A stretch of 64,000 nt of DNA from Anthoceros angustus (Eukaryota; Plantae; Anthocerotophyta): contig MU008213.1 of NCBI GenBank assembly GCA_010909165.1, positions 224,371-288,370 on the forward strand. Direction: 5' to 3'. Made by a program: the position numbers and the translations under genes. Below are positions 45,590 through 63,800 of the stretch, piece after piece; the first letter of the stretch is position 1; each line of letters starts with the position of its first letter. The notes below the pieces were generated by a model. That model saw only the letters and a list, made by a program, of their open reading frames with translations. It did no database searches and was not told where the DNA came from.

Positions 45590-47850
45590 TCATACACCAG
45601 TGGAAAGTACTGCGCCAGCCATGGTGTCAAGATCATGAGGGAAAAAGACCCTGCGCAAGGGAGCAGGAGCTGTTTAATCATGACAACCGCATTGTCTTGC
45701 GTGCTCACTAAGTGCACCACGTCTGATTGAATATGGAGTTGCAGAGTGAAGAGTCTCGAGGAGCCGAAGTGCGATCATACCTACAGGTGTTTTCGTACAA
45801 AGATCTGGCAAAGCTCCCAACATCAGCAACTTTCCTGTAACCAGCTACAACCTCAAATACTTGCCTGCACAGTGCGGAGGGCGATTTGACAACCATTAGC
45901 GGGGGAAGGGACCCTCACCATAAGCCGCAGCTACTCCCATGCAGTTAAACGTCACCTGACTTGGCAAGGTTCATTCCGACTCTTGACTAAACACTGAGGG
46001 TCATGCTTCTCTTTCTTCTTGGAAGGCCAAGTCGTTGAAATATGACTGAAGCCTGCATGGGTTGGCTTGATCTCACAATATGGAGAATCGGTCTCAAGCA
46101 TCATTCTTTCGGCAGGGATACCAGACATGACCTGAAGATTATCCACAGTCTTCAGTGAGCATCCGTTGATACCTGTGGCAACGCAAAGTTCAGTTGGAAA
46201 TGTTCCATGTACTCGGAAACAAATACTTGCCTGTGCATTTCGGAACAAAAAGTCACAGATCTCAGAGCCCAGGCAAAACTCCTCTGCAAGCATATTTTAG
46301 TTGATAAGGAGCTCCTGACCTATGTATAGATTGTCAAACCCTAAGATCTGATCTCTTTCTTCAGCACTCCCAGTAAATGAGTGAACAACCCCACCCTGAA
46401 ATCTGCACAATATAACAGATGGATGAGTCCTCGATACTCATGCAAAATCCTTCCGTCCACCCGCCTACTACTATCCAAATTTCAGAACATTGAGTCGGTT
46501 CACCAATAACTCTGTGGAGCTTAGGAGAAAAGCACCTGAGCTTGTTGCGCTTCAAGATATCAAGAAAATCACTTCCTGCAGCACGCATGTGCAGAAACAT
46601 TGGCAGGTTCGTGGATTCGGCCAGATAGAATTGTTGCTCAAAGTACCTGCAAAATCGTCCACAATCTGAGCAACCGCCTTGTAACATCTCAAAGTGCTGC
46701 TGTACGGTACTACCAACCAAAAACCAATGATACACAACAAGCTAGAGAAACGGCACACGAAGGCCATGTTTGACAGACCAGGAACCGAAACCTTACTTGC
46801 GTTGCGTCTCTGCAGGACAAAATTGGAGCCGGTCATAATCCAAGCCGCACTCACCAATAGCAACGACCTGGAGAAGAAATATACACCTTAAATACCCCTA
46901 CTCCTCAGTGCCCCAAATTCTCGAGTACTACATTCTACATCAACAGCTGCCCAGCACCCTAACAATCAACGGACAGCATGTATACCTTGCCTCTGGCAAC
47001 TCCTTCCCTTGCAAGATTCAAAAGGTCTTGCAAATGTTTCTCTGGATCCCCACTCTCTTCAAACTCCTATGACATCCACTTGACGAATTCAAAAACCTTG
47101 CCGGACACCGCAACAGTAAGGAAGCTTAGCATCAGCTAACAAAGCAGCACTACCTACAATTCTGTCATGTCAAGTACCGTGCATCTTGTTGGATGCACCC
47201 CCACAGTGCAGAAAAGCCGACCTGCGGAGATGGGCTGCGAATGCATCAGTTTGCTGAAGCAGCAGGCAGCACTTCGAAACAGAAGCAACTGTGGCAGAGC
47301 CTCTGTTGCTTACCATCGGTATCAGCAAGCGCCAATGCCTCCTTGGATTCCCGCAGCGACCCCCCAGTCACCTGCAGAGCCAAACAGCTCTCAGCCTCCA
47401 TTCCAGACCCATCCCAAACTCCAGCTCCTGGTGCAACACATCAGAAAATGCAAAACTCACAATGACACGGTTCACGCCAGCATCCCACGCCCGCCTTAGG
47501 ATAGCTCCCATGTCGGGGCCGTGACACTGCTTCCCATGATACACACCCTTGAACACGCCATCTGCAATCAGGTGAAAAAAACAGGCAATGATTCCACACG
47601 CAACCCAACATCACCACACAGACGGCTGAAAGTGCCGCATTTTCCCCTCAAACGCAAGTGCAGCAGTGGGACCGAGGACTCCACACCTGACAGATTGGCT
47701 CCTATGTCTGCAGATTTCTTAGACACACGCATACAAGGACAGGCGTCGCAACCGTGTTAGCCCAGACCCGCAGAAAACAGTGGTGAACCAGAGTGCAGGG
47801 AAGCCAGACGGCAAGCAGCGAGACGTACCGATGAACTTCAGGCCAGCCAT
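45590..47850 (-). CDS. TATDN1: TatD-family DNase (TATDN1-like), multi-exon
   Basis: MAGLKFI|..[94 protein letters not shown]. Confidence 0.92.
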
Positions 47851-48078
47851 GTTTGATACGAAGTACCTTCGTCGGCTCCTGCAGATGCAAAACCAAAGAC
47901 CCACCAGAAGAAACAGCTCCTTATTTTGTTTTGTTCCAATTTCACAATGTGCCAATCCAGTCATTCCCGGCCCTATGTACACAACTTAAAATGAATCCCG
48001 CTTTGAATCTCGGTTCAGCTGAAAACGTTCTACACGCCTTCCCTCTCCCTGGTGCCTTGTGCTCCGTTGTGGTGTGTC

Positions 48079-51000
48079 ATGGGGGAAACGGGGGAAACGG
48101 GGGAGTCGGGGGAGTCGGGGGAGACGAGGGAGACCTCCGCTCCACGGGCAGATCTACTGTGCTTTGCAACCTGGCAGAGCGCAGTGGACGAGGGCTTCTG
48201 GCAGCGGCTGGCCAATTTCAAGCTGAACACGCAGCGGCTGGAGGAGCATCCTGTGCCCATCACGGGCTTCTTCGCTCCATGCGGCCACTCGAAGCTGCCG
48301 TCACGCATGCAGCTCTTGTCCGAGTCGATGCCAGCGGAGTCTGGGGACGTCGAGGAGGTGTCTTGGAATCGGAACCGCTGCCCGGCGCCGGGAACACTTT
48401 ACACCGCTAATTCGCTGGAGAACTTCAAATCATTGGACGGAAAAGCACTTCTGGAAGGTGCAGCTCGGCAGGTGTAGTGCCACTGGTCATGGAGGAGCTT
48501 GCCTTGACGAGTCTGTGTGAAGTTATGTTGTTCGGATGATTGGAATCTGATGACTGCGTGAATTTGTTACAGATATGGGATGACATCCGATCTGGGCGAG
48601 CAGAGGAGTCCAGTAACCTGCTGAACCGTTTCCTGGTGATTTCCTATGCGGATTTGAAGAAGTGGATTTTCTACTACTGGTTCGCATTCCCGGCGATTGT
48701 CCTTCCGACCCCAGCCACTATTTCCTCTGTGAAGACGGCCTCTGAGTTTTGGAGCTCAGACCAGGTAGATTGTCTGTCATGTTGGTTGCAATTGGCAACG
48801 AGTACCTGGCTCGATGTGCCTGATAGTTTGTTCACTAATGTTCTGGCTGTTTTCGCAACAGGCTGCCGGTTTCCTGTCAGCTTGTAAATCTTGGAGGGAA
48901 TCAAAATCGGAGGCATGTAAGTCAGTCAGGCTGAAGTGGTGTAGTTGTGCTAGGGATCTTCAGGAGGAACTTGTTAATGGCTGCGATGCATCTTGTTCAT
49001 CATGTCTTGGTGCGTAGCTAGTAGGTTTTGTTTTGACCGTGGGGACCTCGTCTACAGGCTCGCCTTTTTTCCTTCTGCACAAGAGCCATGATGACTCTGT
49101 GACAGCAAGGCCATTGGGTGAGTGGCGTACCTTGAAGCAGGCCGGTGGCGAGGTTTGTTCGACTCCCTGCCTAGCTCGTCAAATGCCTTGCATCGTTCTT
49201 GCAGTGCCCTCGGTTAAGTTGTCGACTTCTCATGTACAACATTATCACATACTAGTAGTCGTTGCGGGCACACGCAATTTCTTTCCATAGCTGTTCAGCT
49301 ACGTACCTTGACACTGAAAACGGTGGCTGTGTGGCAGATTGTTTGTGCATTCTATGATCCCTGCCACTCCAATAAAAATCCAGGATGGCCTCTTCGAAAT
49401 TTCCTTGCTCTGGCTGTCCAACAGTGGCAAGTGACGGACCTGCGAGTGCTGTGCTACAGAGAGACACGGGGGCAACCTGATTTCCAGCACAGTTTGGTTC
49501 TTGATGTTATTCTTTCAGAAATTCCAGGTAAGTGGTTGAGGGTATTCTTCTGTGGATATGTAAGGGCTTAGCTGCAAGGTTAGAAGCGCCTCACCATAGT
49601 TGGACGGTTTTGCAGAATGGGAAAATTCGAATTTGGAAAGCATTGGTTGGGAGATAAACAGCCGGACAAAGAAGTATGGGCCCCAAATTGCTGACCTGGG
49701 CGCTGTACTCGACCCCGTCAAGTGAGTTTCATGGGTGCATGTCAATTGATCTTTTTGGCAGAATCCTCAGTCTGAGGGAACCTTACTGCTCTCAGGCTAG
49801 CTTCATCAGCTGCTGACCTCAACTTGAAGCTGATGAGGTGGCGCTTGTTGCCATCTTTGAACTTGGAGCGTCTATCGTCCACAAAGTGCTTGATTCTTGG
49901 AGCGGGTACATTGGGCTGTCAGGTTGCACGTGATCTGATGGTAATGTTAGTCTTTAAACTTTGAGGAGGGTGAAACTTTTTCAAGCACTACTGACTTCAT
50001 GAAGCACAGTTTGTAATGTTCTCACTGACTCTGTATAGATTCCTGATTCACAGGCTTGGGGTGTAAAGCATATCACACTTGTAGACAGCGGGCGTGTAGC
50101 AATGTCCAACCCTCTTCGACAGTCTCTATATACTTTTGAGGACTGCCTTAAAGGTGGTAAACCGAAGGCAGAAGCAGCAGCTGTGAATCTGAAGCGTATC
50201 TTCCCTGGTGTGGTAGGGGGACTGATCCTGAGCTGTTGCTGGATGCTATACAGTTTTGGTTAGCTTTCCATTAGTCCTGTGAGTTGCAACCTAGATTGCT
50301 GAGAAGCTACAGTTTGTCAGACTGACATGCATCCTGTAGGAAGCAAGAGGGGTTCAAATGACAATCCCAATGCCTGGCCACAGTGTATCGCAGCAAGAGG
50401 AAGCTCATGTGAAAGAGCAGTGTAGGCAATTGAAACATCTGGTGGATGAACACGACATTGTGTTCCTGCTAACTGACACAAGAGAGAGTCGATGGTTGCC
50501 AACCCTCTTGTGTGCAGAGGGAAACAAGGTGATTGGCTTTGAGTGGATGTTCGTATATTGTGTTTGTGGTGCAGTCTTTGTTATGCTGAGTGGCCACAGA
50601 ATAATATTACAAAGGCTTTGGTGCAGATTGCAATAAATGCCGCGCTGGGTTTTGACACTTTCTTGGTCATGAGACATGGAACAGGGCCTACGTCTGGTCA
50701 GCAGGATGGATCTCTACCTAGATCACGTTTGGGATGCTATTTTTGCAATGACGTGGTTGCTCCACAGGATGTGGGTATTTTGTTCCTGTGTTGGGGGTCA
50801 TTTCGTCCTTGACCTTGTTTTGACTGTTCGGAGAACTGTGAGTGGACACAATGGTGAAGGTTGTGAGATCTGCTGTGATGCAGTCCATGGGGCAGCGAAC
50901 TCTTGATCAGCAGTGCACTGTGACCAGACCGGGTTTGGCTCCAATGGCAGCTGCTCTTGCGGTGGAGCTAGCTGTGAACATCTTGCATCATCCTGATGGG

Positions 51001-51507
51001 TTTGGCTCCTCCCCTGCTCTTGCTCCCTCCGGTGGAAAATTATAATGCTTTAGGTGGCAATATCTTCTCATGATCTCACCCAGCCTTAAGGGTGTCGTGT
51101 TGTTGCAGCAATAGCGCACCCGCAGATCCTGCCACTCCAATTACAGCTAGTACCGATGAGCCACTCGGCATTCTACCTCATCAGGTCAGAGGGTTCGTGG
51201 CCCATTTCGCACAACTAGTGGTGACAGGCCACGCCTTCGACAAGTGTACTGCCTGCTCTAGTATGGTAAGTGTCGACATACATTCTGTGCCTATTCTCTC
51301 TTGGTTTAACCTGTTGGATCTTTTTTGAAACAGAGGTGGTATGGCTAACGAGCACGAAATGTGCAGGTGGTGGAGGAATTCCGTAAACGAGAGACGGATT
51401 TTATTTTGGATGTGTTAAATTACCCAACTTATTTGGAAGATCTAACGGGCATCACAGAGTTAGTTGCTGCTACTGCTGCTTTAAATGTAGACTGGGATGA
51501 GGAGTAG
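48079..51507 (+). CDS. ATG7: Autophagy E1-like enzyme ATG7, multi-exon
   Basis: [91 protein letters not shown], catalytic [31 protein letters not shown]. Confidence 0.96.
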
Positions 51508-51996
51508 AACACTCGGACAGGATGCAGGTGGATTGGTATAGCCCGGGCGATTGGAAATTGGATCCATTTGTTTCGCTGATCCATCTACAGCCCCAAGACC
51601 TGGCCAGGAATTCTGACAGTCCTTTGATAACCTTCAGTCTGGTGCTGTTTCAAAGTATGTCTGCAAGCAACCAAGAAGACTCTCTGCCGGTGCTAGTTCT
51701 TTGTTGGTAGTCGGTGCCTAGATGCAGGACTTTTAAAGACCTTCCGTTCAGTTCAGAGGAGGACCTTCTCTTTTAAGTAGGTACAAAGACCCATATGATC
51801 ACCTATATTAAAGATATAATTTTCATATTATTGGATAATGACAGCAGTTTTTGGTCGTGTTAGGGCAGATGGTGATGTTTCGCACCAAATGTTTGTCGCT
51901 GAAAGCGCATTGTTGAGCATGTCAGGATGATGCTGGTGGTGCCGCAGCCTTGACGTGCCGTGTTGTATGTTACAGGGGCTGCGGGTTGCAGTGTGA

Positions 51997-54782
51997 TCAC
52001 TCCGACGTGGTGAGGTGAACCATGAGCGTCAGAAATTCCGCAAAATCCAGCGCCCAGTCTCCACTGGTGTCCCCGCGCCGCATCAACTCCCTGAGCTCCG
52101 CCTGAGTGCACTCCAAGCCGCGCAGCATCATCCCCGTGCCCAGCTCCTGGAGCGAGATGCGCCCGTCCCCGTCCCGATCATACGCCCTGAACTCCGCCCT
52201 CAAGGCCTGCAGCTGCGCCGGGCTGATCCGCGGCGCGTCCCCCGCCCCAGGCCCCAGCCGCCCCATGAGATTCAAAAACTCCCCGAATTCCAGCGTCCCG
52301 TTCCCGTCCAAGTCCCCCGCGGCGATGTACGCCCGCACCTCCTCCTCCTTCACGTCCTGCCCCAGCAGCCGCAGCAGCGTCCCGAGCTGGTCCGCCGTCA
52401 GGCTTCCGTCCCCGTCCCGGTCCAGCAGGTTGAACTTCTCCCGGTACGCGGCGATCTCCTCCGGGCTGAGCTGGGGGACCGGAAGCGAGGCACCGGGAAC
52501 CGGGGTCGCCGGTGCCGCTGGCGACGCGCCGGCGCCGGAGGCGGCGGCCATGACGATGAGGAACTCCGGCAGACTGAGGCTGCCGTTGCCGTCCAGGTCG
52601 CCCTCGCCGATCATGGCCGCAACCTCGGCCTCGCTGGCCGTCTGGCCAAGACGCCGCAGCGCGGCGCTGAGCTCGCGCGCGCTGATGCTCCCGTCGCCGT
52701 CGGCATCGAACAGCGCGAAGACATGGGTGAAGTGCACAAGCTGCTCCGGCGAGAGCCGCGGCTGGAGCTGGGAGCCCTGTCCATGGCCGCCGCCGGTCAT
52801 CATGTCCAGGAACTCGGCGAAGTCGAGAGTGCCGTTGCCGTCCGCGTCCGCCTGGGCCATGACGGCCTGCAGCTCCGCCTGGCTGAGGTTGTGGCCAAGC
52901 AGCCGCATCGCCGTGGCCAGCTCGTGCGTCGTGATGTGGCCGTCCCCGTCCCTGTCGAACACCATGAACGCCTCCTTCAGCCGGGAGATGTGCTCCAGGG
53001 TGAGCTGGTGCGAGATCGACCCCGACACGCCCTGGCAGGTGAGCTCGTGATGGGTGTACATGAGGTCCAGGAACTCGAGCATGTCGATGACCCCGTCCCC
53101 GTCCACGTCCGCGCTGTGCATCATGGCCTGGAGCTGGGCGGGGGTGGGGCTGTCGCCCAGCAGCCGCAGCGCCACGCCCAGCTCGTCGATGGTGACGCCC
53201 CCGTCCCCGTCCCGGTCGAACGCCGTGAAGGCGTCCTTGAACTCGGCGATCCTATCGGGTGTGAGGTTGGGGAACCGGCGCTGCAGCTCCTGCTTCCTGG
53301 CGATGCATTCCTCGTCGTCCTCCGCCCAGGCGAGCACGTGGTTGAGCATGAGCAGGGCCTCGCCGCACAGGCGCTGCCCGGCCAGCCGCAGCGCCTCGGC
53401 CCGGTATTCCTTCCGCCGCCGCCGGAATTTCTCCTCCTGCTCCGGGAATTTGTCCAAGAGCCTGCTGCGCACGTCGATGTCGTCGAACTCGATCTTGAGG
53501 GGGCGGTCCTCCCGCCGGTCGAAGGGGCTGCGTGTCATGCTGCTGGCGTGGTCGATGAAGGTCCATCTGTCGTACGTCCGCCCGTCGCTGCCCTTCACCG
53601 GATCGCACATCACCTCCCAGGTGATGGGGTCGTGGTACCACTTGAGGGTGTCTGTTGAAGGAGTCTTCTTGGACTTGGTGGGTGGGTGATGGATGTCCGC
53701 CACAGGCGCTGGTGTTGCAGAGGCAGTGGCAGTGGCAGTGCCCCCTGTCCTTCTCTTCGAATGCGCTTCCAGTTCCGCCACGATCTTCAGTCCAGCGTAG
53801 CAGAAGACGGCGGTCATTAGTACTGCCACTCTGGACATGGTGGTTGCAATCTTGGCGTGATGCCATCACCTCCGCACAGACACCAGCTGCAACGGGGGAT
53901 CAGGATGGTCATGACAGGACCAGGACTTACTTCCGAGAAGAACTGCCGCACTTCATCGGTCTGAGGCTCTGTTGCCTTGAGGAAGAAGAGAGCCTCGTCG
54001 ATTTTGTTGGGAAACGCCTGCATCTCAGCCCGAACGGGCTGCCACAGCCCTTGCAGCTCCCGTTGGAGCACATCCTTCAGGGACGGCGCGCTGCTGCTTG
54101 TCAGAGCCTTGACAAGGCTTTCAACCCTGGACAAGGCGGACTCGAACTCCTCCTTGTTTTCAGGGCTCTTTATGTCCACCTGCAACCGAGCCCCAACCAG
54201 ACCATGTCACTCCACCTCGCAGTACACCCAAGCACAAGCAATGCAAAACTTTCTACTTGCACCCAATCCACAAACATTCCAGTCTTCTGGACGTTAACCA
54301 CGCACATTCAAGGCAGTGAACAAGATGGCTATCTGGAAAGGAGTGACGATGCGCTCACGCAGCAGCCGCAGCTCCGAGTGCACCCTCTTGGCATCCCAGA
54401 CCGAGTCAAAGAAGCCCTTGCCCAGGATCTTATGCGCCTGCTTAGCCGTGTCCCGCAAATCCACCACCAACGCCTCTGCAACCAAGCAAGCATGACAAAA
54501 CAAAGGCCTCAGCTTCGCCTCTTCCTTCCAGGCCCAATCAAAGCCCACTGCGTTGCACATACCATTAGCCCATGTTGCGGAGTTGTTACGCATCATGGTG
54601 TTGCCACTCAGCACCTTGATGTTCTCCTCCAGATTCCTCATCAACCCATTGAGCTCCGTCGCGACATCTTCCGTACCGCCGCCGCCATCCTGCTTCTGAT
54701 CCCACAACCCCTTGCCCAAGAGCACGATTCTCAGCAGCGTCTCCGCACCAGAGATGGCCGCCTTCACGGCAGATTCCCCCAT
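51997..54782 (-). CDS. Helical N-domain + U-box + TPR-like hairpin + five calmodulin N-lobes (10 EF-hands); ~837 aa from ATG 54782 (~901 aa from ATG 54974)
   Basis: Predicted phase-0 exons 54782(or 54974)-54306, 54179-53931, 53784-51997. U-box [40 protein letters not shown] loops [120 protein letters not shown]. Confidence 0.85.
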
Positions 54783-55182
54783 TCCTGCACTAGCACCCGG
54801 GACTGGCAGCCCGGCCGCAGGCACAGCTTGCTTTGAGGAGATTCGCTTCCAGAAGGCGTGGAGCCGAAGGAATCCGCGGGACGTGAGGGTCTTGGGTTTC
54901 ATCCGTTCGAGGGGGGATTTGCACAGTGGGCTGCAACTGTCAGGAAGGTGCGACAAGCGCGTGAACTTGGTCATCAGCTTCCGAAGACCGGCATGCCGAT
55001 TTCATCAATTCCAGATCACTGTAATCAAACCCACCATGGTCCCGGGCCCGGTACAGGAGTACAGGATGAAGCAATATGTGACACGATCACCAACATTTTA
55101 CCCCTAACCCGATCAGTTGACGCGATTACTGTGCGTCTCGTCTGACACTCTGACTGTGTTCGAATTGCTGGGATCATAAAGT

Positions 55183-58455: not shown

Positions 58456-58739
58456 TACTTTTTAATATTTCAACCAAATAAATTTTATTTCATAATAAAT
58501 TTTTAATTATTTTAAAATATGTATTATTTTAATTTTAAAATTAAAAATATCTAATTTAGAACCCTCTAAATGGGACACTAAAGCGTACTTCCTAATATTC
58601 CCAATTGGATGGAGTCCATTGGAATGTATATGTGCGAGGTGTGAACAATGAAGAATGCCTCTAGAATTCGAACAAAGGATGGAGCGTTTCCGGTTGCAGG
58701 GCATTAGAACCACATAAGGATTTTTCTCACAATGCATCA

Positions 58740-58920
58740 ATTTTCCATCGCCGAGGAGAACACGTGGTTGAGCATGAGGAATGCCTTGCTGCACAGTTAC
58801 TCGCCGGGTGCCCCTTGGCATAGGCGCTAAATGGCCAGTCGCCATGCCTCGGCCCTATACTCTCGCCTGCATAGGCAATATTTGTCCTCCACCTCCGAGA
58901 ATTTGTAAGGCTGCATGCCT
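58740..58920 (-). pseudogene. Fragment of a U-box/EF-hand gene paralog (TPR-like segment)
   Basis: Reads KFSEVEDKYCLCRREYRAEAWRLAI*RLC..AFLMLNHV, versus [39 protein letters not shown] in the intact gene. Confidence 0.7.
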
Positions 58921-59129
58921 TGCTGCAATTTGAAAAATTCATCATGCATATGATGTTTTCAAGCCTCGTGAGGTGTGAGCGGTGTACTTGGTAATCACTA
59001 TTGTCTCACTAAAGTCCCACACACTAAGAGTCCGAGCTTTAAATACTTTAAAAAAATTTAAAACAGAAAGTATTCTTATAATCTTCATGGCCTTTTGCTT
59101 TCTACTTTCAACCCCTATATATTGTTCCA

Positions 59130-59518
59130 GTTGAAAGCAGCTCATCGATGGTGATGCCCCCATCCCGTGAGGGTTGAACAAGGTGAAGGCCCTGAACTCG
59201 CCCACCTTCTCGGGCGTGAGAGTCGAGAAACGGGCCTGCAGCTCCTGCTTCTTCGCCTGGCATTCCTAGTCATCCTCCGCCCAGGAGAGCACGTTGTGGA
59301 GCATCGGCAGCGTGTCTTCGCATAGCCGATGCCTTGAGGAATCTGAGGGCCTCATCGATTTTGTTGGGATGCGCTTCCATCTCAGCCCGCACAAGTTGCC
59401 ACAGCCCTTGCAGCTCTTGTTGCAGCACATGGTTAAGGGATGCAATGCTGCTGCTTGTCAGAGCCTTGAGAAGGCTTTGAACACTAGACAAGGCGTATTC
59501 GAACTCCTCCTTGTTGTT
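59130..59518 (-). pseudogene. Deleted paralog of the U-box/EF-hand gene (exon-2 homolog fused to the TPR end and EF1 start)
   Basis: [62 protein letters not shown], then NVLSWAEDD*ECQAKKQELQARFSTLTPEKVGEF. Confidence 0.8.
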
Positions 59519-59662
59519 GTTAGAAATGATTTATTACAACATATCAAAATATGTTATGAAGAGTGCCCTAAAAATAACAAACTTGTATACTAGAAAGCAT
59601 TTTCTAGAAGATCCGAACTTCCAATCAATAGTTCATATCAACTTTACAAGGCTCTTAACATG

Positions 59663-60270: not shown

Positions 60271-60400
60271 AGGCACGAACTTCACATTGTGGAAGTTGAA
60301 GCTGAAGATGCTTCTCATCGACTGAGGACTATGAAAGTTCGTCGACAACGGCCTCGGAAAAACACCCACCGAAGCGGACACCGAGAAAGATGGAAAAGGA

Positions 60401-60852
60401 TTGGCGACAATCTTCTTAATGTGTCTGATGACATACTCTCTCAATTGAGTGAGTGTAGAAGAGCATTGATGACAATCCTTCTCAATGTGTCCGATGACAT
60501 ACTCTCTCAATTGAGTGAGTGTAGAAGAGCATTGGCGACAATCCTTCTCAATGTGTCCGATGACATACTCTCTCAATTGAGTGAGTGTAGAAGAGCATTG
60601 GCGACAATCCTTCTCAATGTGTCCGATGACATACTCTCTCAATTGAGTGAGTGTAGAAGAGCATTGGCGACAATCCTTCTCAATGTGTCCGATGACATAC
60701 TCTCTCAATTGAGTGAGTGTAGAAGAGCATTTGCGACTATCCTTCTCAATATGTCCGATGACATACTCTCTCAATTGAGTGAGTGTAGAAGAGCATTGGC
60801 CACAATCCTTCTCAATGTGTCCAATGACATACTCTCTCAATTGAGTGAGTGT
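60401..60852 (+). repeat. About 7 copies of a 66-bp in-frame repeat within gag (a second noisy array at ~61420-61855)
   Basis: Units start at 60401, 60466, 60532, 60598, 60664, 60730, 60796 and encode LATILLNVSDDILSQLSECRRA. Confidence 0.92.
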
Positions 60853-63800
60853 ACAACCTCAAAAGCAGCATGGACGACTCTCTGCAACATATATGAGAAG
60901 AAGAGCTTGGTGAATGAGATGTTATTGGAGCAGCAATTGCCAACTTCAAGATGGTCGAGGGTGACACCATTCAACAACATGTCAACTTGGTGGATCAAAT
61001 GAAGGCGGCGGACGTCAAACCTTCTGAAAGAAAGGTTATCGTGGTGTTGCTGAGTAGCTTACCATCCGCATACAAGCAATTTGTGTTGGCCTTTAGAGCG
61101 TCGGTAGCGATGCGTCAAGCGACCAACCACCAACGCGTTGGATGAGGTGGTTGGGTTGCTCTACAAGAGGAGCTGGAGAATTCCTTCAAGAAGAAGAGAA
61201 TGGAGACACATATAATGAAGAAGTTGGGAGGAGACACATATAATGAAGAAGTTGGGAGGAGACACATATATAATGAAGAAGTTGGAAGGCACGAACTTCA
61301 CATTGTGGAAGTTGAAGCTGAAGATGCTTCTCATCGTGAGGACTATGAAAGTTCGGTGACAACGGCCTCGGAAAAACACCCACCGAGCGGACACCGAGAA
61401 AGATGGAAAAGGATTACGACAATCTTCTTAATGTGTTCGATGACATACTCTCAATTGAGTGAGTGTAGAAGAGCATTGATGACAATCCTTCTCAATGTGT
61501 CCATGACATACTCTCTCAATTGAGTGAGTGTAGAAGAGCATTGGCGACAATCCTTCTCAATGTGTCCGATGACATACTCTCTCAATTGAGTGAGTGTAGA
61601 AGAGCATTAATCCTTCTCAATGTGTCCGATGACATACTCTCTCAATTGAGTGAGTGTAGAAGAGCATTGGCGACAATCCTTCTCAATGTGTCCGATGACA
61701 TACTCTCTCTCAATTGAGTGAGTGTAGAAGAGCATTTCATTATCCTTCTCAATATGTCCGATGACATACTCTCTCAATTGAGTGAGTGTAGAAGAGCATT
61801 GGCCACAATCCTTCTCAATGTCCAATGACATACTCTCTCAATTGAGTGAGTGTACAACATCAAAAAGCGGCATGGGCGACTCTGCAACATATATGAGAAG
61901 AAGAGCTTGGTGAATGAGATGTTATTGGAGCAACAATTGCCAACTTCAAGATGGTCGAGGTGACACCATTCAACAACACGTCAACAAGTTGAAGTGGATC
62001 AAATGAAGGCGGCGGACGTCAAACCTTCCGAAAGAAAGGTTATCGTGGTGTTCTTGAGTAGCTTACCATCCGCATACAAGCAATTTGTGTTGGCCTTTAG
62101 AGCGTCGGTAGCGATGCGTCAAGCGACCAACCACCAACGTTGGATGAGGTGGTTGGGTTGCTCCTACAAGAGCTGGAGAATTCCTTCAAGAAGAAGAGAA
62201 TGGAGACTCGGTGCTCTTCTCAAAGAAGGGAACAACACGTGGGAAGACTTCACAAGCCAACTCAAGAAGGATCAAGGAGAAGGTGCGAAGAAAAGGTGTG
62301 GGGTACTTGCCATTATTGCAAAAAGCCTAATCACTATGCCAAGGATTGTAGGACAAGGTTGGTGACTTGAAGAAGGAAAGGTCACAAGCCAATCAAGTGA
62401 GTGAGAAGGAAGAACATCTTTTATTTGTCTCAACCGTAGAAAGAGTACGACTCCCATCAAAGAAGGATGAGAGTTTGTACCTCGACTGAGCATCTCAACA
62501 CTTCACCTACAACCGGCCTTGGTTCTCAAGCTATGAAGAAATGCCGGCGGGGCATAAAGTGGCACTTGGAGACAATAGGTCACACGAGATCAAAGGAAGA
62601 GGTATGATCAAGGTTCAACTCCCTGGAGGGCCATCCAAAGGTACTATCAAGGATGTGCACAATGTGCCTGGTCTTGCAAAGAATCTTCTTTCAATAGCAA
62701 GTATCACTGACCCTGGGAATGAGATTGTATTCAACTCGAGGGCAAGTCCCATCCAACCCGAGCAATTAGAATCACCTAATGTCAAGGTGATAGCTCGAGG
62801 TATTTGGGAAGGCAATCTCTACAAGTTATGTGCTTCTGTAGGTGATCAACAAGCTTGCACATTTGTGTCAAGCTCACCTAAAAGCACTGGGTCAGTAGAT
62901 TTGTGGAATCAATGCTTGGGGCACAATTAAGTGGACAACATCAAGATGATGATGAATCAACAAATGGTGACCGACTTGGATTTAAAGGAGATTGATGAGC
63001 TGCGATTATGCCAAGGGTGCATGATACGAAAGCTTCACCGAACCAAGTTCCCAAGGATTGGAGCGCGTTGAGTAGCAAAGGTGTTGGAGCTTTTACATGC
63101 CGCTGTGTGTGGACCAATGAAGAACCCTACCCATAGAGGAGCCCGCTACATTCTAAACACCATAATATTTGAAGCGGCTGAATATACATGACGGCGGTGA
63201 ATATCTGACAACGGGGTTTTCAATGGGTATCGAAGGCCATATTTGAGCATACCTGCGAAGATGGCATAATAAGGGTGTGACGCCCTACACATGCTATGAC
63301 ATATACATGCAGGAAGGTCCGTCTAATCGAGCATTGTTTTGCTAGAAACGATGCCCATGTCCTTAGACCATGCGATACGATTAGGATCCGTTAATGACCC
63401 GAACAGCGACCCACAGGGCCCCTTTGGAGGGAATGCGTACACATATGTATACTCTCTTGCTATACACCCATATATGCACATGGTGGGCGAGGTTTTGAAC
63501 AACGATAGCGGTTAAAAGGGCGGCGAGCGGAAGCTGATCGGCGCGGCATGCGGCGCCCACGTCCGCCCGAGGACTTGTCGAGGCAGCGTGTAGGCGCGTA
63601 GCGTTGAATGACTTTCGATGCCAAGTAGGACTCACTTCTTCAAGCAGTTTAAGCGCATCGCTGCCTTAAGGACTAGTCATTTGCCGGGCACCGATCGAGG
63701 GGCGAACATACAAAATGAACAAAAGTTGCTTCTTCCTCAGTGGCTGTGGACAAGGCACCTTGCACGCCTCCCACTCCCTCTACCGGGCGCTGCTCTTTTT

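Follow-up and report, generated by a model that had tools for sequence, protein, structure and literature searches.

Can a ubiquitin ligase read calcium by itself, through sensor lobes carried in its own polypeptide chain? The question is raised by a gene at positions 51997-54782, minus strand, of a 64,000-nucleotide stretch of Anthoceros angustus DNA (contig MU008213.1, positions 224,371 to 288,370; hereafter the window), which an initial annotation had described as a U-box fused to five pairs of EF-hands. The gene is real and is transcribed, and its 808-residue product is best read, from its domains, as a soluble, expressed ubiquitin ligase (E3) of the plant U-box (PUB) kind. What is new in this PUB-type ligase is its C-terminal module; the swapping of such modules is itself the rule in the family to which this protein belongs.

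The gene model was built upon Logan contigs of run X1, which are labelled 'RNA?' (the kind was guessed) and yet are spliced, and which show 0 mismatches to the window. Together these contigs tile 51500-54825, with 51500-53784 tiled at 0 mismatches, and they define a single gene with four coding exons, whose spliced coding sequence (54782-54563 + 54475-54306 + 54179-53931 + 53784-51997) encodes 808 residues. The initial annotation had drawn three phase-0 exons and a protein of ~840-900 residues; the RNA joints instead give intron phases 1, 0, and 0, place an in-frame 87-nt intron (54476-54562) inside what had been read through as an unbroken first exon, and start the last exon at 53784 rather than upstream of ATG 53838. 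The position and phase of this first intron are identical in a homologous locus from another assembly (L001, described below), and the protein encoded by the last exon begins IVAELEAH... Coding sequence has a G+C content of 65% (86% at third codon positions) compared to 52-56% in the introns and 48% in the whole window. A transcript joining the U-box to the EF-hand array, as the fusion implies, is present: one X1 contig (52671-53564) runs from residue 287, within the U-box, through residue 585, within EF5, and a transcript contig from a related organism, discussed below, runs from the U-box into EF1. The breaks between X1 contigs are 20-25-nt overlaps at branch points between paralogous transcripts. 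A second X1 transcript contig of 178 nt, with 9 differences, lies over the U-box at 53545-53670 and points to an expressed paralog.

Translation was assigned to ATG 54782 because RNA depth is zero at 54850-54983 and homologs begin at the equivalent methionine, those of Marchantia and L001 both starting where this ATG falls in the alignment; an alternative start at ATG 54974 is unsupported on both counts. Rejected was a start at ATG 53838, which heads the mechanical open reading frame (ORF) and would give the hydrophobic sequence '[18 protein letters not shown]' with the look of a membrane anchor. By the RNA joints this ATG is intronic, lying within intron 3, which also holds an in-frame TGA above it. 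N-myristoylation at the Met-Gly start is unlikely, since Glu at position 3 and Val at position 6 depart from the usual consensus, and that start is not conserved in L001.

Pfam analysis of the mechanical ORF (51997-53838, minus strand, 613 residues) matched the U-box family PF04564 at 32.0 bits against a cut-off of 21.4 (ORF residues 68-110, profile positions 5-48 of 73), EF-hand_7 in five stretches with an expectation value (E) of 3.9e-72, and EF-hand_1 in nine stretches, in agreement with the proposed fusion of a U-box to five EF-hand pairs. The array consists of five modules of 76 residues separated by linkers of 5-19 residues, with module 1 joined straight to the preceding segment without any linker. 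Module 1 opens with [13 protein letters not shown], which corresponds in the alignment to the beginning of the calmodulin N-lobe, and a complete calmodulin-like reading frame appears to have been fused head-on to that segment. Gapless comparison of the five modules with the calmodulin lobe sequences, as printed in the HMMER alignment, resulted in scores of 147-217 for the N-lobe and of 112-147 for the C-lobe; the C-lobe fragment is ~5 residues shorter at its start, which is too little to explain a gap of 35-84 points, and the early impression that every module resembles an N-lobe therefore holds. Identity to the N-lobe is 40-61%, module 2 being the most calmodulin-like of the five (43/70 residues identical). 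Eight of the ten 12-residue loops are canonical (Asp at 1, Asp/Asn/Ser at 3 and 5, Gly at 6, Glu at 12), the exceptions being those first noticed by eye, EF7 with Gln at position 12 and EF10 with Trp at position 6, and we infer that the eight competent loops bind Ca2+. The positions that line the target-binding pocket of calmodulin (F19, L32, M36, L39, M51, F68, M71, M72, and others) are hydrophobic, best so in modules 1-3.

The U-box was examined together with the segment that follows it, using a profile made from eight homologs. This profile matches the U-box of UBE4A (E 1.4e-5) and then those of AtPUB14, OsPUB12/CIE1, GmPUB13, UBE4B, Ufd2, and CHIP. An AlphaFold2 model of residues 250-385, computed with 42 homologs, reached a mean predicted local distance difference (pLDDT) score of 92.2 and a predicted template modelling (TM) score of 0.82. 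Each of its best 29 fold matches in the PDB is the U-box or RING domain of an E3 ligase, in several cases solved with a bound ubiquitin-conjugating enzyme (E2), the U-box entries among them having match probabilities of 0.72-1.0 and TM scores by target of about 0.5-0.68; the top matches are the U-boxes of E4B, OsCIE1, GmPUB13, CHIP, and Ufd2 (probability 1.0, TM by target 0.57-0.68, 64-74 columns). The second half of the U-box, which lies beyond the Pfam alignment, is present, because the fold matches span the whole domain. When the loops are aligned with those of UBE4A, DPI falls on DPI and SPFDR on DPFNR, and their prolines are wholly or almost invariant in a 42-sequence alignment of the family; Ile, Phe, and Arg in the two motifs are putative E2 contacts, as in E4B. 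On the alignment with UBE4A, the replacement of the usual Cys in DPI-for-CPI and SPFDR-for-CPxT is the E4/UFD2 pattern and not decay. Sequence and model together indicate an intact U-box of a type that occurs in active ligases, from which we infer ligase activity here.

Three helices follow the U-box in the model (model residues 79-100, 104-117, and 122-134). The last two had been taken for a TPR-like hairpin; the Pfam scan of the 613-residue ORF returned no TPR family at E up to 0.1, and the hairpin belongs instead to a three-helix extension that is kept in all ~64 family representatives, including those without any C-terminal module. The first helix (residues 331-350) is basic and amphipathic with a net charge of about +5. 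Its core positions R88, Y91, R92, A95, and L96 (alignment numbering) are kept in family members that lack EF-hands, and a run of four consecutive Arg is found in both EF-bearing proteins described below and not in the Marchantia or Ceratodon relatives.

To which family does this ligase belong? A HMMER scan of 1.84 billion representative sequences with the profile of the U-box and extension gave 336 matches at E <= 1e-3, ~64 of which cover the full profile (positions ~5-135), and 15 columns of the 42-row family alignment are invariant. Liverworts (Marchantia, Riccia, and Calypogeia), a moss (Ceratodon), and ferns (Adiantum) supply the named members. Judged by these alignments, this is a family of non-seed land plants built from an N-terminal domain (N-domain), an E4/UFD2-like U-box, and the three-helix extension. 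What follows the extension varies, and may be SPRY, a protein kinase, ARM, ZZ, TPR, a ubiquitin-like domain with SPRY, or nothing. The EF-hand array of the Anthoceros protein sits exactly where sister proteins bear ARM, TPR, SPRY, kinase, or ZZ domains, and the early suggestion that the lobes replace the ARM repeats thus fits the family anatomy, with ARM as one of several modules in that place. In a maximum-likelihood tree of the U-box and extension, the Anthoceros protein and one other EF-bearing protein, P0001, are sisters (support 100/96) within a supported clade of nine members that also contains the Ceratodon SPRY protein and the Marchantia and Riccia proteins. This placement, together with the G+C content of 48%, would suit a hornwort. 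The C-terminal module differs by lineage within this one clade, because it mixes liverwort proteins with TPR or nothing, a moss protein with SPRY and a ubiquitin-like domain, and the Anthoceros protein with EF-hands. Two proteins of the liverwort Calypogeia fissa (P0012 and P0050) carry the U-box and extension at the C-terminus of NB-ARC proteins, P0012 with an additional alpha/beta-hydrolase before the NB-ARC; these may be fusions of a nucleotide-binding leucine-rich repeat receptor (NLR) to a ligase, or annotation run-ons.

The N-domain is as much a part of the family as the U-box. A jackhmmer search started from the window sequence found about 30 members at E 1e-81 to 1e-46, with the alignments always ending just before the U-box. 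The domain was modelled on the Marchantia homolog with 30 aligned rows, since in the window three exons share its coding sequence; the predicted structure consists entirely of helices (pLDDT 81, predicted TM score 0.78). Foldseek searches of the Swiss-Prot models returned the N-termini of PUB13, PUB12, SPL11, and MCA1/2, together with CNR13 and a coiled-coil (CC) NLR, all as weak matches (E 0.1-0.7, TM 0.26-0.38), and against the PDB returned designed helical proteins and receptors only, with nothing usable. According to PMC8049495, an N-terminal domain named 'MCAfunc' is common to PUB13, PUB45, and MCA, its oldest partners being U-box and ARM. VIA-align comparison of the first four helices matched the Rx CC domain best (Z 10.2, root-mean-square deviation 2.4 A, 105/107 residues), at a level where Z below about 13 is unsafe for helical bundles; the CC of MLA13, the CC-R of NRG1, MLKL, AtMLKL3, and HET-S (Z 6-7.7) and the TKB domain of Cbl (Z 6.8) likewise fall below this safe level. 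The Pfam family MLKL_N is matched by 3 of 30 family members, at a best E of 0.002. A literature search directed at UND and MLKL turned up MLKL papers only. An MLKL/RPW8/UND-like bundle is a plausible candidate fold for the modelled N-domain.

The fusion of a U-box to calmodulin lobes is rare in public data and apparently undescribed. A literature search for U-box plus EF-hand proteins found no description of such an architecture, in line with the initial annotation, which knew of no described class of this kind; one other protein of this kind, P0001, does exist among the relatives. It was the only match to a profile hidden Markov model of the five modules among the best 150 representatives, and in a U-box and extension search of a 5.8-billion-sequence collection, which gave 13 relatives at E <= 1e-8, EF-hand Pfam families were found only in P0001. 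Look-alikes in the ESM Atlas were TPR+EF-hand, EF-hand-only, or CHIP clusters, all <0.8, and no U-box+EF-hand cluster was among them. The architecture seems confined to one lineage.

P0001 is encoded at locus L001 on a Logan contig (SRR33208241). This gene is likewise split into four coding exons, its introns agreeing with those of the Anthoceros gene in position and phase, and it encodes the N-domain, U-box, extension, and six EF modules, five of the six with two canonical loops each and with a Gln/Pro-rich insert before the last. Identity to the Anthoceros protein is 47% overall and 73% in the U-box. A tree of the individual modules resolves two pairings with P0001 and no others, one between the third modules (90/94) and one between the final modules (84/85); because these modules pair across the two proteins, the EF array predates the split of the two organisms. 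Additional coverage comes from a transcript contig of a related organism (X4, organism C), ~93% identical, which covers residues 298-423, beginning in the U-box, crossing the extension, and reaching EF1, and from contigs of another (X2, organism B) covering residues 645-712 and 719-778 in modules 4-5. Among the 25 differences listed for X4, partly shared by X2, 13 are synonymous and 12 are not, which indicates moderate purifying selection provided that the contigs are orthologous. A tblastn search of the window with the spliced protein also found a decayed partial copy ~4 kb upstream of the gene, with N-domain exon 3, the extension hairpin, and the start of EF1 and without the U-box; it contains an in-frame TAG (WAEDD*EC), and its frame is broken in the EF1 loop.

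How, then, might such a protein work? We give an even chance to a recruitment model, in which a PUB-type E3 uses a Ca2+-sensing array of calmodulin lobes as its variable target-binding module. The U-box would recruit a ubiquitin-charged E2, the EF modules would bind Ca2+ (8/10 loops being competent), and the loaded lobes would expose hydrophobic pockets able to hold amphipathic helices of their targets; these targets would be ubiquitinated only at high Ca2+, and five lobes would allow multivalent capture. A substrate-binding role for the lobes fits the family, because the array holds the position of the relatives' modules. Several observations weigh against this model, or against parts of it. 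The Ile, Phe, and Arg of the U-box loop motifs are not among the conserved columns of the 42-sequence alignment; Met is scarce in modules 4 and 5, where some of the pocket positions are polar; the loops of EF7 and EF10 are probably defective; and not every lobe need bind targets, to judge from these residues. The ratio of 13 to 12 shows only moderate constraint, the contigs compared could come from paralogs, and the full mRNA is covered by no single X1 contig. Furthermore, calmodulin lobes may bind in cis, the post-U-box helix being basic and amphipathic, so that regulation in place of recruitment is a live alternative. Such a cis-switch would resemble that of calcium-dependent protein kinases (CDPKs), with the EF array clamping a helix of its own protein (the post-U-box helix or one in the N-domain), with or without Ca2+, and thereby gating E2 access, dimerisation, or release of the N-domain. 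The four-Arg run peculiar to the two EF-bearing proteins, the direct joining of module 1 to the extension, and the plant precedent of a kinase with a calmodulin-like domain all argue for it, whereas conservation of the helix core in members without EF-hands suggests that this helix is first of all structural, and five lobes exceed what a switch needs; on balance we regard it as rather unlikely.

The remaining explanations have less to commend them than the recruitment of targets by the lobes. The array could be an integrated decoy or guard that mimics host calmodulin or calmodulin-like proteins (CMLs) targeted by effectors, with the ligase and its coiled-coil-like N-domain reporting or disposing of the effector. 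The placement of the U-box module at the C-terminus of the Calypogeia NB-ARC proteins may be cited in its favor, as may the list of N-domain fold matches headed by Rx CC and including MLA13 CC, NRG1 CC-R, MLKL, and HET-S, but those scores lie under the level trusted for helical bundles, the Calypogeia gene models could be annotation fusions, and the canonical Ca2+ ligands kept in both species would be needless for a pure decoy, so that we consider this improbable. Only marginally more improbable is a non-catalytic scaffold or Ca2+ buffer whose U-box no longer recruits E2 and which acts through Ca2+ binding or its N-domain. The limited Pfam alignment of the U-box and the change of the usual loop Cys to Asp and Ser could be read in this way; the same replacements are normal in active E4/UFD2-type U-boxes, including Ufd2 and E4B with structures containing E2, the fold model covers the entire domain, and the 15 positions noted above are invariant across 42 family members. 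There is hardly any chance that the fusion is an artefact, whether from misassembly or from neighbouring U-box and calmodulin-like genes having been read together. Its only encouragement is the want of one RNA contig over the full mRNA, and it is at odds with the location of U-box, extension, and EF array in one uninterrupted exon, with the RNA contig covering residues 287-585, and with the recurrence of the same junction in the independent L001 assembly and in a third organism's transcript contig; the decayed copy at 58.7-59.6 kb also holds the extension-to-EF1 junction.

The coordinates of the gene, of the predicted parts of its protein, and of the decayed copy are collected in Table 1.

Table 1. 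Exons, introns, and predicted protein parts of the U-box/EF-hand gene and its decayed copy, in window coordinates.
Feature	Position	Strand	Residues	Remarks
Coding exon 1	54563..54782	minus	1-73 + 1 nt	First part of N-domain; X1 contig 54563-54825 joins to 54475
Intron 1	54476..54562	minus		87 nt, GT..AG (GTATGT...TTGCAG), phase 1, in frame; X1 joint 54475/54563
Coding exon 2	54306..54475	minus	74-130	N-domain; X1 contig 3 and joints
Intron 2	54180..54305	minus		126 nt, GT..AG (GTGCGT...TTGCAG), phase 0; joint in X1 and in X4 (related organism)
Coding exon 3	53931..54179	minus	131-213	Second half of N-domain; X1 contig 3 spans exons 2, 3, and 4
Intron 3	53785..53930	minus		146 nt, GT..AG, phase 0; X1 joint 53784/53931, depth 160
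Coding exon 4	51997..53784	minus	214-808 + stop	End of N-domain, linker, U-box, extension, EF array; no intron
N-domain		minus	1-~225	Predicted all-helical
Linker		minus	226-257	Thr/Ala/Pro-rich
U-box	53434..53652	minus	258-330	PF04564, family profile, and model
Three-helix extension	53272..53433	minus	331-384	First helix basic (FRRRRKEYR...); helices 2 and 3 are the supposed TPR-like hairpin
EF module 1	53044..53271	minus	385-460	EF1 and EF2 canonical
EF module 2	52783..53010	minus	472-547	EF3 and EF4 canonical
EF module 3	52534..52761	minus	555-630	EF5 and EF6 canonical
EF module 4	52249..52476	minus	650-725	EF7 with Gln at loop position 12; EF8 canonical
EF module 5	52006..52233	minus	731-806	EF9 canonical; EF10 with Ser at 3 and Trp at 6
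Decayed partial copy	58722..59578	minus		tblastn of the spliced protein against the window; ~4 kb upstream of the gene

Other features were observed around the gene. A multi-exon gene resembling ATG7, the E1-like autophagy enzyme, lies on the plus strand at ~47800-51510, convergent with the U-box gene; [11 protein letters not shown] is among its motifs, and its reading frame closes with ...VDWDEE at 51507. The 3' untranslated regions of the two genes probably overlap, because an RNA contig of 3219 nt crosses both 3' ends. Upstream of the U-box gene a separate RNA contig covers 55051-55500 at a depth of 13, compared to ~150 for the gene, and the zero-depth interval at 54850-54983 divides it from the 5' end of the gene (~54825). 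Two tandem arrays of a 66-bp repeat, at 60393-60853 and 61417-61854, have ~7 copies each with 89-95% matches, give long repetitive ORFs on either strand, and have 28-bp repeats at their flanks; this block looks like a transposon or minisatellite.

Comparison with known systems places the protein in several contexts. Like the PUB ligases with UND and ARM domains (AtPUB12/13 and OsSPL11), it has a helical N-domain followed by a U-box and then a protein-binding module, and some members of its own family carry ARM repeats as well, but it differs from them in its E4-like type of U-box sequence, its extra three-helix extension, and its EF array. To our knowledge, an EF-hand array is not among the familiar partner domains of PUB proteins. 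Its relatives in liverwort, moss, and fern (for example, Marchantia polymorpha MPTK1_2g10460, Ceratodon M758_4G163900, and Adiantum GOP47_0027308) share a homologous N-domain (jackhmmer E to 1e-81) and a U-box and extension that are 50-64% identical and fall in the same tree clade, and unlike the Anthoceros protein they have no EF-hands. The family is a natural experiment in module swapping, which can tell how PUB ligases gain targets or inputs.

Outside the PUB ligases the likenesses are looser. c-Cbl is a RING E3 with a four-helix bundle and an EF-hand, and its TKB domain is among the fold matches of the N-domain, yet its single EF-hand is structural and lies inside a phosphotyrosine-binding domain before the RING. 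CHIP is an E3 with TPR and a U-box that is a fold match to the present one, but its TPR is N-terminal and it has no EF-hands. No evidence points to common descent with either protein. Repeated EF pairs are shared with CMLs of the CML12/TCH3 type, Sorghum CML12 (P0014) being one of the matches; unlike calmodulin and CMLs, the Anthoceros protein has no lobe of the C-type, has five pairs, and is fused to a ligase. Calmodulin proper has ~149 residues with one N-lobe and one C-lobe and no other domain, which does not describe five N-lobe-type modules on a ligase. The second-best match to the EF array (E 9e-132) is a calmodulin-like EF array in a scallop, Ylistrum balloti (P0002, 818 residues), and for this reason long arrays of calmodulin lobes must have arisen independently in animals.

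A further comparison is that with the plant Ca2+ decoders, which comprise calmodulin and CMLs, CBL-CIPK pairs, CDPKs, and CCaMK. CDPKs combine an enzyme with a calmodulin-like Ca2+ sensor in one chain, a 'sensor-responder' design. The Anthoceros protein is like them in design only, joining an enzyme domain to a Ca2+ sensor with a candidate basic helix after the U-box; it differs in that its output is a U-box and in that it carries ten EF-hands of the N-lobe type, in contrast to one domain of four EF-hands with an N- and a C-lobe. We tentatively raise the possibility, which we regard as somewhat doubtful, of a further class of plant sensor-responder beside CDPKs and CCaMK, an E3 that reads Ca2+ through attached lobes and that may couple this input to a bundle of the immune-CC/MLKL type. 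A corollary of this possibility, in the manner of a Rosetta stone, is that free calmodulin or CMLs may act on the EF-less relatives of liverworts, mosses, and ferns by binding the basic helix after the U-box. We know of links from Ca2+ to ubiquitination in plants only in indirect form, such as a CDPK phosphorylating a PUB; if the present reading is correct, a ligase with calmodulin lobes of its own would connect Ca2+ to ubiquitination directly and without a kinase step.

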